DNA of 64,000 bases, taken from positions 248,001-312,000 of the forward strand of contig CDRNST010000258.1 of the NCBI GenBank assembly GCA_977016875.1. The letters are read 5' to 3'. Within the stretch, counting starts at the first letter, position 1. Each line of letters opens with the position of its first letter. This document shows, piece after piece, positions 21,904 through 25,239 of the stretch. Both the position numbers and the translations under genes were made by a program. Source of the stretch: Pavona decussata. Lineage: Eukaryota. The notes under the pieces were generated by a model. The model ran no database searches. It saw only the letters and a program-made list of their open reading frames with translations, and was not told where the DNA came from.

Positions 21904-22109
21904 GCCCTTCTTGGGATAATCTGTACTTTTAGTCTTTTTTGTTGTCAATTAATTATTTTTGGCTAAAATGTGTGCATGAGGATCTTTTTGCAAAATAGTA
22001 TTTCGTTTATGAAAGAAATGTGATGGTATATTTCCAGCCTGGTGAATGAATGAGAATGATGATTATTCTAGAAAGTGACGCAGGCATACTCGGAAAAAAG
22101 AAATCCGAG

Positions 22110-22182
22110 TGCTCCTATCAGAAGTCGAACCTAAGACCTTCCGATTACTAGTTCGGATGCTCTACCACTGAGCTACAGGAGA
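22110..22182 (-). ncRNA. tRNA-like unit, inverted partner copy
   Basis: Reverse complement of 22270-22342 with two T-stem changes that become G-U pairs. Confidence 0.65.
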
Positions 22183-22269
22183 CTCGTGGGAGCTAAGGCC
22201 GTTAAACTTTAAGGTCGTTAAACTATGTTTGTCCCATGAACCTAGTTTAATGGCCTTAGCTCCCACGAG

Positions 22270-22342
22270 TCTCCTGTAGCTCAGTGGTAGAGCATCCGAA
22301 CTAGTAATCGGAAGGTCTTAGGTTCGACTCCTAATAGGAGCA
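22270..22342 (+). ncRNA. tRNA-like unit (Thr-AGT-like, 8-nt anticodon loop); SINE head or tRNA pseudogene
   Basis: A box TAGCTCAGTGGTAGAGC, anticodon stem TCCGA/TCGGA, T arm TTAGG-TTCGACT-CCTAA, acceptor CTCCTG/TAGGAG, followed by a T6 run. Confidence 0.7.
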
Positions 22343-25239
22343 CTCGGATTTCTTTTTTCCGAGTATGCCTGCGTCACTTTCTAGAATAATCATCATTCTC
22401 AGTATGTTGTTTGTATGGAAAATATCGTAACGTAGGGAAAACATATATAAACATGAATATATACACCCTCTCTGTATGTGATTTGTAGAATCATTCTCGG
22501 AATGACAGACGGCCGAGTGAGAATGTTGGTTGAATTCGTTCCCCTGAACAAGTGAAAACAAAAAATATTATCTGGATAGGCTGAAAAGAGGAGTTGCAAC
22601 TTTCAGCATGCCACGAATATTTGGTTTGAGGAAATAAAATCTGACTCCCCCAGCAGAATCGAGGCCTTCTGCACACATGACAGCTGTTTTTCATATTGAG
22701 CAAACGCCATGAAACATGATGACTTTTTCAGGAATTTATCTGGGGACAATTTGATGTGAACGTGTTTGAACAGGCCTTTGTAAATGAATAAAAGTTACTT
22801 TTTTACAATATATTTTATATCCTTAGCTGATATTGGTGCTCTTTTGGTGTTTTCGGTCACTTTCGTTTAAATTTGGCGCTTTCCTTAAGGTTTGGGGAAA
22901 TCCAGAAATAAGATGGCGGATTCAAGATGGCCGCCGGAAAATCCTTTAACGTCACCACGTTAAAGGGGGGGCGGGAGGGGGGGGAATCCATCTAATGATT
23001 TACATAGGATTAGCATTTGAGGCCTTTATATACTGAACTCTAGGATTTATCCATGTTAATAAAGAAAAAAATCAATTGAGAAGCTGTCATCAATAAGGAC
23101 TGCGATTTACCACTCAGTTACGTCAAAGAAAATGCATTTAAATTTTTCCCTTACACAAGGTTACTTAATTTGCCGCCTACAATGAAAGTGAGCCGCAGGA
23201 AAGAATACGCAGTCCTTTAAAAAGGGTCACAATGCGCGTGGGATTTAAGTCTTGCCTTTTACTGTAACTTCCGTGTATTTTAACGAATTAACTTTTCCGA
23301 CCAACGTGCAGATTTCGTGATAATTCCAAAGCGTGTTTAGTGTTTTCGGTATTTAAAAGAATATCAAAATGAAAATAAAGGAAATAATTCAAAAGATTGA
23401 TCAGACGAATCATTACTAATGATGCTGGGATAATTAATCATGTAAATTACAAATCGGATTTTGCCTCTTGAACGCAATGACTCGGAGAAATTGACTGCCT
23501 TTTCGAGTTCTATTTTTGTTTTAATTATGTAGGTGCAAAAAAAAAAAGTTAAAACAGACAAAAAAAATCTGCGAACGAGAATTACCGACAGGCCATAACG
23601 AATGAATGCCTAATAATGGTATAGACTAGAAAACTCTTTGGAAACTCATGAAACATGGTTGTTGACAGGTGTTACCCACACTGTTTCAGTGTAAAGGAGC
23701 ATACTTGATCTACTTCCTTGTGTAAAGTTGTAAAATCATAATTACGAAAAATATTGATACATGCAGACTCAATGATTGTATCTCTGTTTGCAAGGGCAAT
23801 ATGTAGTTGTCGAAAAATAAAAGTAGTTGGAAAGAGGAGGTCACGGCTCAAAAATACAATGGCGGATTTTTTTTTTTTTCTTTTTTTTTTTATGAGGAGG
23901 AGAAAAATCATCTGGTAACCAAAGGAGTTATACCGGTTTCGATCGCTTGATACCTGCAAGGCAAAGTTAAAGCAGATAGCTCGCTTAGACCGACAGTTTG
24001 TCTGCTTTCCTGTATTTATGCACAGAAGCATTATTAGTCTCCGACAAACCGGCTAAAAATATGTGTTTGGTTTCGTCCGGACCAAGAGATCATCACGAAT
24101 TTGTATATGTAGTGTTGAAATTAGTTATCCATCTTTATTGAAAAGTCGGTCGACAGATAGCCAGGCTGTTAATCGTTTGTAAAGGCCTTTTCTACAATCA
24201 TTGTGGTGTAAATTTTTGGCATCGCTTTCATCCGAAAAAACACACAATATATGTCAAGTTTAAAAGCCAGAAACTTATCGCTTTGAAGCGTTGCTGCTCA
24301 AAATAATCTTTTCTGCCTTCACGAGGGCTCATAGATTTGCATTTCACTGCGAACGTCTTATTAAGAGCAGAGGTTACGATGGAAAGAATCTACTAAATCT
24401 AAAACATTTAAGGCGATTAGGAAAAGGAAATAAGAGAAAAGCAAAACAAAACAAAGCAAACTCACCTTTCTGATAAACTGTTAATTCCAATGTGTTTTAA
24501 TACGAATATCATCTTTCAATATTTTAAAGAGGAACGTGCTTTGAATGCTTTCAATAACTTCTTTGTCCTACTATCTACTTTTCATGAAAGATTCCATCTT
24601 GTCATGAAGAAACCATCAAATCATGATGAAATCACGCTTTGATGAGTCAATCGGCCAAAGCTAACTAAACATTCGTTGTTAAGCGCCAGGTGATCAGTTG
24701 TTCTTAGAATGAATTGTTTTGTTCAGACGCGATACGACGAAGACAAACGGATGAGGAACTTACCTCTCGAAATATTATCACTTGATATATCGGATAGGAT
24801 GATTTTATCGTTCTCTGGTTGACTGTGCAAAGTCAGTTTTTCACTCTCAGCTTTGATCTTTCTGTCGAGCCAATGATAAGAAAACCAATTAGAAATTCAA
24901 TAAATAATTTAAGTAGCAATCGAAATGGACTGTTAATTTATGAAAATAATGGTCATAAATTGAGGTCCCGAAAACAACAAACCCACAAATTTAATCCAGA
25001 AGAAAGCATTCCCAACAATAGTCAAGTTAAACTTTATTCAAGTCCGAAATCTCAATAAAAAAACTAAATTGGAGTCTGGAACTTTTGTCTGTTTAGGAAA
25101 GTGTCAAAAGTACATCCTCACTTGGTTTAGAAGCATTATGGAAAAAGTACGAGGAACAGCTCAAACCAATGGTAATTCAACATGTTCCTCTCTTGTTAGC
25201 AAAGAACACCAAGGCTGTAAAGTAAGTATTATTTCTATG

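Follow-up and report, generated by a model that had tools for sequence, protein, structure and literature searches.

A head-to-head tRNA-like palindrome in Pavona decussata and the insertion geometry of its 259-bp repeat family

The window studied here, i.e. the whole stretch of 64,000 nucleotides that was analysed, contains a palindrome of two divergent tRNA-like units, and it is of interest to ask what kind of object this is: a mobile form in its own right, a functional element of the neighbouring gene, an artefact, or the trace of a single insertion. Our answer, held with a probability of about 70%, is that 22008-22401 represents one retrotransposition event of a non-coding 259-bp repeat family, where the estimate covers the whole reading, including a copying process of the type used by Penelope-like elements (PLEs).

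The palindrome and its tRNA-like modules

The repeat search of the window gives inverted arms at 22051-22208 and 22244-22401, which are 158 nt each, 98% complementary and separated by a spacer of 35 nt. The near-perfect palindrome reported in the preliminary description, with arms of about 157 bp and a spacer of about 37 bp, is therefore real. The RNA fold of 22005-22401 is computed at -316 kcal/mol, against -101 ± 5 kcal/mol for shuffled sequences. When the 259-bp unit of the family (positions q1 to q259) is compared with the window by BLAST, q1-204 aligns to 22208-22005 with 98% identity. The left arm (22051-22208, minus strand) runs from q158 to q1 according to both the repeat search and BLAST, and departs from the family consensus at two positions, q8 and q87; the right arm (22244-22401, plus strand) consists of q1-158, is 99.4% identical to the unit, and terminates in a tail-less 3' end. 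On the left alone, BLAST and the alignment with the unit carry the arm beyond the symmetric part by about 41-43 nt, out to 22008-22010, and this "tail" (22008-22050, minus strand) is the reverse complement of q159-201. The extra sequence on one side means that the insertion is 22008-22401 and is asymmetric. The spacer is also element sequence rather than foreign DNA: the alignment resolves it into a 16-nt second, slightly different copy of the reverse complement of q1-16, recognised as a direct repeat and forming a junction filler (22209-22224, minus strand), followed by q241-259, a 5' extension of the right arm that is identical to the unit at 19 of 19 positions (22225-22243, plus strand). 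Comparison of the two window arms with the family consensus finds no private variant common to both. The insertion is flanked by an imperfect target-site duplication (TSD), GTATTTCGTTT at 21998-22008 and GTATGTTGTTT at 22402-22412, with 9 of 11 positions identical; one mismatch between the copies, TCG against TTG, is a CpG-type transition. It had been noted at first that neither a poly(A) tail nor a TSD is evident. The tail is indeed absent, while the statement on the TSD has to be withdrawn, as TSDs are clear in the family and the window copy has an imperfect one.

Each arm was described as a tRNA-like cloverleaf with an 8-nt loop and A/B boxes, and Rfam and ARAGORN both recover the fold. The Thr-AGT-like module with its 8-nt anticodon loop is located at 22110-22182 on the minus strand (RF00005, 43.8 bits) and at 22270-22342 on the plus strand (RF00005, 52.2 bits). 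ARAGORN detects both folds and leaves the anticodon unnamed, because the loop has 8 nt; after deletion of any one of the first three loop bases, the call becomes tRNA-Thr(AGT). In the unit, the A box is placed at q34, the B box at q78, and a single T6 run at q110. The hairpin CTCGGA/TCCGAG with its T-run, also expected after each module, is present at 22343-22363 on the plus strand (CTCGGA-TTTCTTTTT-TCCGAG, containing the sole T6 run of the unit) and at 22089-22109 in the minus-strand reading, both corresponding to unit q100-120. The judgement that these are not tRNA genes holds as well, with the 8-nt loop, no anticodon assigned, and a 1:72 pair flagged as non-standard. As for the two T-stem differences between the arms, both are transitions and remain pairable as G-U, in accordance with the initial observation, but any transition within a G-C or A-U pair always yields a wobble pair, so that these differences say nothing about selection.

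The boxes bear on the suggestion that the locus is a selected bidirectional Pol III/TFIIIC boundary or a source of dsRNA upstream of the receptor-kinase gene; the start codon of that gene (19234, minus strand) does lie about 2.8 kb away. The A and B boxes of the right arm are intact and the hairpin potential is very large, while the B box of the left arm is already altered, and the window copy is one of thousands of near-identical young copies spread genome-wide, with nothing to set it apart. Such a selected function is very improbable, and we see no sign of a role for the neighbouring gene.

A family inserted by target-primed reverse transcription

A 26-mer of the anticodon arm has 3,281 genome matches at no more than one mismatch, against 0 for the reversed control. 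The family comprises at least 3,281 copies in the 602-Mb coral genome, 97-100% identical to the window arm, and is young, abundant and non-coding. Scans of JGI metagenomes with this 26-mer and with a 22-mer of the 3' end returned no matches. The unit is tandem and non-coding, 259 bp long with 43.6% GC, and is composed of a 26-nt leader, the tRNA-Thr-like module (from q27), then the T-run hairpin and about 140 nt of other sequence. The copies have fixed 3' ends, either at q158-164 or at q197-204, which read ...TTCTCA or ...CTTTCA and at which no A-rich or simple-repeat tail is found, while the 5' ends of the non-inverted copies are variable and spread over q1-q233. Head-to-tail arrays with a period of 259 bp contain 2-6 units among the loci read, and at least nine units at C84:479117-481218; the units of one array all carry the same inherited variants.

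The TSDs of the family are 7-14 bp long and usually start with CA, which matches the ...TCA found at both unit 3' ends (microhomology). A flanking direct repeat of at least 7 nt is present in 27 of 63 insertions, compared with 3% when the flanks are mismatched between loci, and the count is 21 of 30 among the copies of at least 97% identity. Many single-arm copies also have TSDs, for example L002, L023, L025, L064 and L067. On the whole, the fixed 3' ends, the variable 5' ends and the TSDs show that the family inserts by target-primed reverse transcription. The two earlier proposals that the unit is mobile and that it should not be taken for an ordinary SINE with a poly(A) tail are both sustained. 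Since the T6 run at q110 is located upstream of both 3' ends (q158 and q199) kept by every copy, the copied template cannot be a Pol III transcript with normal termination.

Inverted twins and the coupling of their ends

In a position-ordered sample, 14 of 41 insertions are inverted and 27 are not. The architecture of the window copy recurs at 24 other independent loci, and all 25 inverted insertions are arranged minus-then-plus with their 5' ends facing inward (P = 3e-8). Their outer ends are coupled: in 22 of 23 inverted insertions one end is of the q158 type and the other of the q199 type (P = 6e-9; 37.5% expected from the 21:7 end usage in non-inverted copies), the 158/158 pair never occurs and the 199/199 pair occurs once. 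In the same proportion, 22 of 23, the 41-nt extension q159-199 stands at one outer end alone. The inner joints, by comparison, vary by locus (q1, 4, 17, 21, 24, 46-58, 104, 110, 116, 129 and others), and those of the other inverted copies cluster at the T-run hairpin. The TSD encloses the whole inverted composite and is perfect at most other inverted loci. In several cases the two arms have locus-private variants in common, i.e. 245G in L018, 192A in L015, 10A/18A in L046 and 140G in L039.

These observations do not agree with the proposal that the element propagates as a head-to-head tRNA dimer. The joints differ at nearly every locus, most of the sampled copies are non-inverted, and each twin lies within one TSD; every insertion therefore assembles its twin afresh from the 259-bp unit. 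The palindrome is a by-product of insertion chemistry, and is neither the propagating form nor evidence of host function. The preliminary description had also considered that the copies might be mostly single tailed SINEs, with the palindrome as a chance double insertion. Single-armed copies do prevail among those sampled, but they lack tails, and the inverted ones are not products of chance double insertion.

An assembly artefact deserves attention in the case of the window copy, for assembled contigs from two samples enter each outer end by 26 nt, which is under the 31-nt bridging rule, and the palindrome centre is unspanned by reads or contigs. A fold-back of the assembly, or else two independent insertions that hit one spot by chance, could in principle give such a sequence. 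Against this, the same architecture is found at 24 other loci, mostly with a perfect TSD around the composite. Minus-plus is the only order seen, the outer ends are coupled, and private variants recur in both arms, while from chance double hits one would expect either order and ends with no relation to each other. We therefore hold both forms of this explanation to be extremely unlikely. Long inverted arms with a short flanking direct repeat also superficially resemble an element with terminal inverted repeats, so that a DNA-level origin might come to mind, be it a foldback transposon, a MITE with long terminal inverted repeats, or a fold-back duplication after insertion. This is hardly credible for a family in which 27 of 41 sampled copies are single-armed with variable 5' ends, many of them still with TSDs, in which the TSD length varies from 7 to 14 nt and the inner joints vary, and whose two termini differ by 41 nt, with the tail on one side.

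More has to be said on the possibility of an ordinary tRNA-derived SINE mobilised by a LINE of the CR1, L2 or RTE type, which lack poly(A), with the inversions arising by L1-like twin priming. The TSDs, the 5' truncation, the tRNA-like module with A and B boxes and the target microhomology at the 3' end are all in line with it, and APE-type LINEs exist in the genome, one ORF adjoining L030. L1 twin priming is also similar to the mechanism proposed below, in that both nicked target strands prime on RNA and the inverted 5' part lies inside one TSD. However, the inverted part of L1 has its outer end at an arbitrary internal position, whereas in the coral family both outer ends are canonical 3' ends with a fixed difference of 41 nt in 22 of 23 cases. 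Classical twin priming was also rejected for the reason that the outer end of the inverted arm mismatches the inner end of the direct arm. Nor is the head of a canonical tRNA-derived SINE (SINE2) seen: the tRNA-like part does not open the unit but starts at q27, inside the tandem unit, and the T6 run is upstream of both 3' ends. Finally, arrays of at least nine units and a one-sided tail are not LINE/SINE features and have been named as PLE-specific (PMC8557442). We thus regard a LINE-mobilised SINE as unlikely.

Penelope-like geometry and the copied template

PLE insertions are recognised in the literature by severe 5' truncation, by partial tandems, by a 5'-truncated copy lying inverted at the 5' end and by a tail of 30-40 bp at one end only, and non-autonomous forms make multicopy head-to-tail insertions (PMC8557442; PMC8969392). 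The coral family has 5' truncation with a fixed 3' end, head-to-tail tandems, an inverted 5' copy and a one-sided tail, the last being 41 nt. In this comparison its insertion geometry is that of the PLEs, and the family appears to be a relative of animal retrozymes and of schistosome Sm-alpha that bears a tRNA-like module and lacks a ribozyme. The likeness extends to PLEs together with their non-autonomous derivatives such as the MRC1-type passengers of Chlamys (Craig et al. 2021, PMC8557442), where 5' truncation, head-to-tail tandems, the inverted 5' copy, TSDs and multicopy non-coding passengers are all described. Unlike the described PLE passengers, the coral unit carries a tRNA-like module, and we found no report of such a module in PLE passengers in the literature searched.

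A second difference concerns the hammerhead ribozyme, which is part of canonical PLE pLTRs and of retrozymes but is missing from the coral unit. An Rfam search of three tandem units, with E values up to 5 admitted, gave tRNA alone, with no hammerhead, and the CUGANGA core is absent on both strands of the unit; hammerhead motifs do occur elsewhere in the same genome. Naiad-type PLEs are also without a hammerhead ribozyme (PMC8557442). Animal non-LTR retrozymes (Cervera & de la Pena 2020, PMC7229834; Li et al. 2026 preprint) resemble the coral family in having non-coding tandem units and TSDs and in occurring beside PLEs and in corals, and their units of 170-400 bp with GC below 50% are comparable with 259 bp and 44%, but they are defined by a type I hammerhead ribozyme in every unit. 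The schistosome repeats Sm-alpha and Sj-alpha are likewise short units in thousands of copies that tRNA finders call as tRNA, in their case tRNA-Gln-like (PMC2770079). Sm-alpha differs in having an active hammerhead ribozyme. It was reportedly described by Ferbeyre and colleagues in 1998 as tandemly organised and provided with Pol III boxes.

PLE integration is still not understood, and tandems, inversions and the one-sided tail have been described without explanation (PMC8557442). A short, very young, high-copy passenger preserves hundreds of insertion events in full, each readable from one end to the other, and the mechanism is constrained by the minus-plus order, the 158/199 coupling, the CA microhomology, the hot spot of joints at the hairpin and the variants common to both arms. 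Taken together, these constraints point to priming by both target strands on one template, at two sites separated by 41 nt, a mechanism that we infer from structure. In the mechanism we propose, copying would be done by a PLE reverse transcriptase with a GIY-YIG endonuclease. One nicked target strand would prime at the UCA site of q156-158 and, in at least a third of events, the other nicked strand would prime on the same template at the UCA site of q197-199, 41 nt away, giving two antisense cDNAs on opposite strands. Each cDNA would end at no fixed position, though stops would be concentrated at the hairpin and near q240-q4, and the two molecules would then be joined. The product would be a head-to-head twin in which both outer ends are element 3' ends and a 41-nt tail remains on one side; in the window, the minus arm would come from the q199 site and the plus arm from the q158 site. 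If this holds, a PLE-type passenger can carry a tRNA-like module without a ribozyme. In repeat annotation, it is easy to mistake such copies for SINEs, tRNA pseudogenes or foldback elements.

The same machinery might act on a different template, namely a circular RNA one unit in length, which tRNA-type processing with ligation would produce and from which cDNA would be made by rolling-circle reverse transcription. The presence of one q158 and one q199 site on such a circle would explain the end coupling, and a single-unit template accounts for the absence of 158/158 pairs, the one 199/199 pair and the variants common to all units of an array. In addition, circular RNAs accumulate from animal retrozymes of similar size, including coral ones, and these retrozymes are regarded as probable PLE passengers (PMC7229834; bioRxiv 10.64898/2026.07.22.740005). 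On the other side, no ribozyme is found in the unit, contigs from RNA runs cannot tell circles from multimers or contaminating DNA, and autonomous PLEs yield the same tandems and one-sided tail without any known circle (PMC8557442); a linear RNA with 41-nt terminal redundancy, or a multimer primed solely in its last unit, fits as well as the circle does. We consider the circular template rather unlikely. A related and equally doubtful idea is that the tRNA-like module stands in for the retrozyme hammerhead: host tRNA-processing enzymes and an RNA ligase would cut multimers to unit-length RNA, circular or with 41-nt redundancy, which the PLE reverse transcriptase would copy round and round with both target strands priming. 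If true, the retrozyme life cycle would have a counterpart that relies on processing by proteins and needs no ribozyme.

Coming back to PLE-type copying in general, we looked for a possible source of the enzyme. No GIY-YIG motif is found in the window or in the 70 loci, and the ORFs of at least 170 aa in these sequences are those of APE endonuclease, trypsin, DDE transposase and GPCRs alone. The common flanks of L013 and L014 were rejected as a helper, being a 2.5-kb duplicated segment with a nested copy. In the whole genome there are 933 GIY-YIG candidates, judged by the GIY-YIG domain alone, with open frames up to 1,041 aa; all 150 that were scored exceed the Pfam cut-off. Between places with the tail pattern and places with GIY-YIG there is one coincidence, on C529, where tails at 168859 and 169170 are about 1 kb from the best GIY-YIG match at 170146; with about 0.08 such coincidences expected by chance among the places listed, this proximity is suggestive only. 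Within 7 kb, the GIY-YIG candidates form 13 minus-plus pairs versus one plus-minus pair.

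The window palindrome and its tRNA-like arms

A repeat search of the window bears out the inverted repeat of the preliminary description, with two 158-nt arms (22051-22208 and 22244-22401) that are 98% complementary and 35 nt between them. As RNA, the palindrome region has a predicted fold of -316 kcal/mol, compared with -101 for shuffled sequence. There is one Rfam tRNA match per arm (52.2 and 43.8 bits). ARAGORN finds a tRNA-like fold in both arms and assigns an anticodon in neither, because the anticodon loop has 8 nt; deletion of any one of its first three bases gives a call of tRNA-Thr(AGT). 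An A box and a B box are seen, and the sole T6 run lies inside the CTCGGA/TCCGAG hairpin. Rfam, ARAGORN and the sequence itself hence agree with the tRNA-like arms, boxes and T-run hairpin described before, and it was right to regard the element as neither a tRNA gene nor an ordinary SINE. A transition in a paired stem always leaves a wobble pair. The two T-stem differences noted before are pairable as was said, but being transitions they are uninformative on selection.

Mapped onto the 259-bp unit of its family (positions q1-q259), the window copy begins with a minus-strand arm from q201 (22008) to q1 (22208). It is followed by a second, 16-nt copy of the reverse complement of q1-16, which is a joint duplication, then by q241-259 in the same sense as the plus arm, and finally by the plus-strand arm, q1-158, ending at 22401. 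The outer ends are asymmetric, with a 41-nt extension on the minus arm. The spacer, put at about 37 nt before, does exist (35 nt), but it is element sequence plus the small joint duplication. The flanks 21998-22008 and 22402-22412 are identical at 9 of 11 positions and form an imperfect target-site duplication (TSD), one mismatch being a CpG-type transition; the earlier statement that no TSD is evident is overturned by this and by the direct repeats of at least 7 nt at the flanks of the family. The window arms differ at three positions and have no private variants in common. Relative to the start codon at 19234 (minus strand), the copy sits 2.8 kb upstream; about 100 bp off its left end there is a microsatellite, (ATG)n/(GAT)n, some 78 bp long (21826-21903). 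As a single copy, the window palindrome is ordinary, and the roles suggested for it before, as a boundary or a dsRNA source, are hypothetical.

A retroposed family with two alternative 3' ends

In the 602-Mb coral genome, near-identical copies of the 158-nt arm (97-100% identity) are found on many contigs. The copy-number check that had been proposed gives 3,281 places for a 26-mer of the anticodon arm with at most one mismatch, and 0 for the reversed control. Adjacent copies are spaced 259 bp apart, and we defined the unit by mapping a 259-bp monomer from one family locus (L024:1501-1759) onto the loci. The unit comprises a leader (q1-26), the tRNA-like module (q27-99), the hairpin with the T-run (q100-120) and other sequence (q121-259). 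Two sets of loci were used, the 20 independent best matches of the arm, and the 40 places that come first when the pattern matches are listed by contig order, taken without choice by score. Arrays have 1-6 units among the loci read and at least nine in the longest one seen (G000:C84:479117-481218), where tail motifs recur every 259-263 bp across about 2.1 kb, with an inverted unit on the left side (478741, minus). In addition, a 2.5-kb segment is present twice, 200 kb apart and 97.7% identical (loci L013 and L014, G000:C200:2180342 and C200:1973226), and contains a nested unit copy together with ORFs of 269 and 239 aa, neither of which has a Pfam match.

Among the family loci read, 3' ends fall at two sites only, q158-164 or q197-204, and 5' ends are scattered across the unit. 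Direct repeats of at least 7 nt are found at the flanks of 27 of 63 insertions, against 3% for flanks paired between different loci, and in 21 of 30 copies that are at least 97% identical. Most flanking repeats start with CA, which is also the last two bases of both 3' termini (...TTCTCA and ...CTTTCA), indicating target-template microhomology. The fixed 3' ends, spread 5' ends, TSDs and CA microhomology together demonstrate insertion by target-primed reverse transcription. Since both 3' ends come after the T6 run (q110), the template could not be a Pol III transcript that terminated normally. The 5' ends of non-inverted copies accumulate near q239-q4 (12 of 36 at q1-8); this pile-up of 5' and inner ends (q239-259, q1-8) precedes the tRNA-like module by 20-35 nt and may mark a favoured 5' end of the RNA or a site where reverse transcriptase is strongly stopped.

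Inverted insertions arise in single events

How often copies are palindromic, another check proposed before, can be read from the position-ordered sample as the share having an inverted part, 14 of 41 insertions. By age, the share is 8 of 10 for young insertions (at least 97% identical) and 6 of 31 for older ones. Either the young subfamily produces these head-to-head twins more often, or palindromic copies, as they age, disappear or change beyond recognition. The order is minus-then-plus in all 25 independent inverted insertions (P = 3e-8), and therefore the 5' ends point inward and each outer end is a 3' end of the element. A q158-type end is paired with a q199-type end in 22 of 23 inverted insertions having clean ends, while end use in non-inverted copies (21:7 for the two types) predicts 37.5% mixed pairs (P = 6e-9). 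Only one inverted insertion, L039 (G000:C2:2008317-2008639), has q199-type ends at both sides, and it is without TSD. Inner joints take different positions at different loci, and they form two clusters: 12 of 50 ends lie in q95-119, at the hairpin (P = 0.002), and 14 of 50 lie near q239-q4 (P = 2e-4). In twins, the TSD encloses the whole composite, and locus-private variants occur in both arms (245G at L018, 192A at L015, 10A/18A at L046 and 140G at L039). Because of the order, end coupling, variable joints, enclosing TSD and private variants in both arms, each twin comes from a single template or a single source in one event. These five regularities rule out a chance double insertion, and the suggested propagation as a dimer fails because the inner joints vary by locus and the twin arises in one insertion event.

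Our analysis demonstrates retroposition with two alternative 3' ends and one-event twins with coupled ends. In the mechanism we propose, a bottom-strand nick would prime at one UCA site, and in many events a top-strand nick would prime at the second UCA site, 41 nt off, on that same template. This template may be multimeric, circular, or redundant at its termini by 41 nt. The two antisense cDNAs would end at variable positions, often at the hairpin, and would then be joined, at times with small duplications, as presumably in the window copy.

Probable Penelope-like relatives and other observations

Insertions of Penelope-like elements (PLEs) have strong 5' truncation, partial tandems, an inverted 5'-truncated copy that often adjoins the 5' end, and a tail of 30-40 bp that in many cases is at just one end; non-autonomous relatives form insertions of multiple copies arranged head-to-tail, and Naiad-type PLEs are without hammerhead ribozymes (PMC8557442, Craig et al. 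2021; also PMC8969392). The coral family has all these structural marks, with q159-199 as the tail, and is probably a PLE-type passenger. The genome contains 933 candidate GIY-YIG genes, of which all 150 scored are above the Pfam cut-off, with open frames of up to 1,041 aa. GIY-YIG pairs within 7 kb are minus-plus in 13 cases versus plus-minus in one. The GIY-YIG match that scores best in the genome (G000:C529, 170146-170415, minus) has two tail motifs of the family (168859, minus, and 169170, plus) at a distance of about 1 kb; these could be a copy inserted in the 3' region of a PLE, or a clue to the helper.

Type I hammerhead motifs number 50 above the Rfam cut-off, with minus-plus pairs among them, and therefore the ribozyme-bearing elements of this genome show the same head-to-head geometry. 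Such pairs, 280-490 bp apart, are located at C8:760893/761378, C19:942334/942721, C44:356323/356605 and C47:1929663/1929954. A ribozyme search of the 259-bp unit found none. Animal retrozymes, with 170-400 bp tandem units carrying a hammerhead, have been reported in a coral and are viewed as PLE passengers (PMC7229834; bioRxiv 10.64898/2026.07.22.740005), and schistosome Sm-alpha has a tRNA-like part and a hammerhead together (PMC2770079). These are closest to the coral family, whereas the coral unit has the tRNA-like module and no ribozyme; no PLE passenger of this kind is described in the literature searched.

Metagenome scans for the family sequence gave no matches. Words of the element are present in runs of the source species and of four other labelled organisms, and in coral metagenomes and metatranscriptomes; a match in an RNA library is no proof that the element is transcribed. 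At each outer end of the window copy, assembled contigs of the runs enter by only 26 nt; they stop short of its centre and show no empty site and no RNA ends.

Elsewhere in the window, a 359-aa ORF (41145-42221, minus) has a DDE_Tnp_4 domain (E = 7e-12) and is probably a remnant of a PIF/Harbinger-type transposase. Two intronless rhodopsin-family GPCR ORFs (53431-54609 and 58873-60300, both plus; 7tm_1, E = 1e-20) have an N-terminal stretch in common and are probably tandem paralogues.
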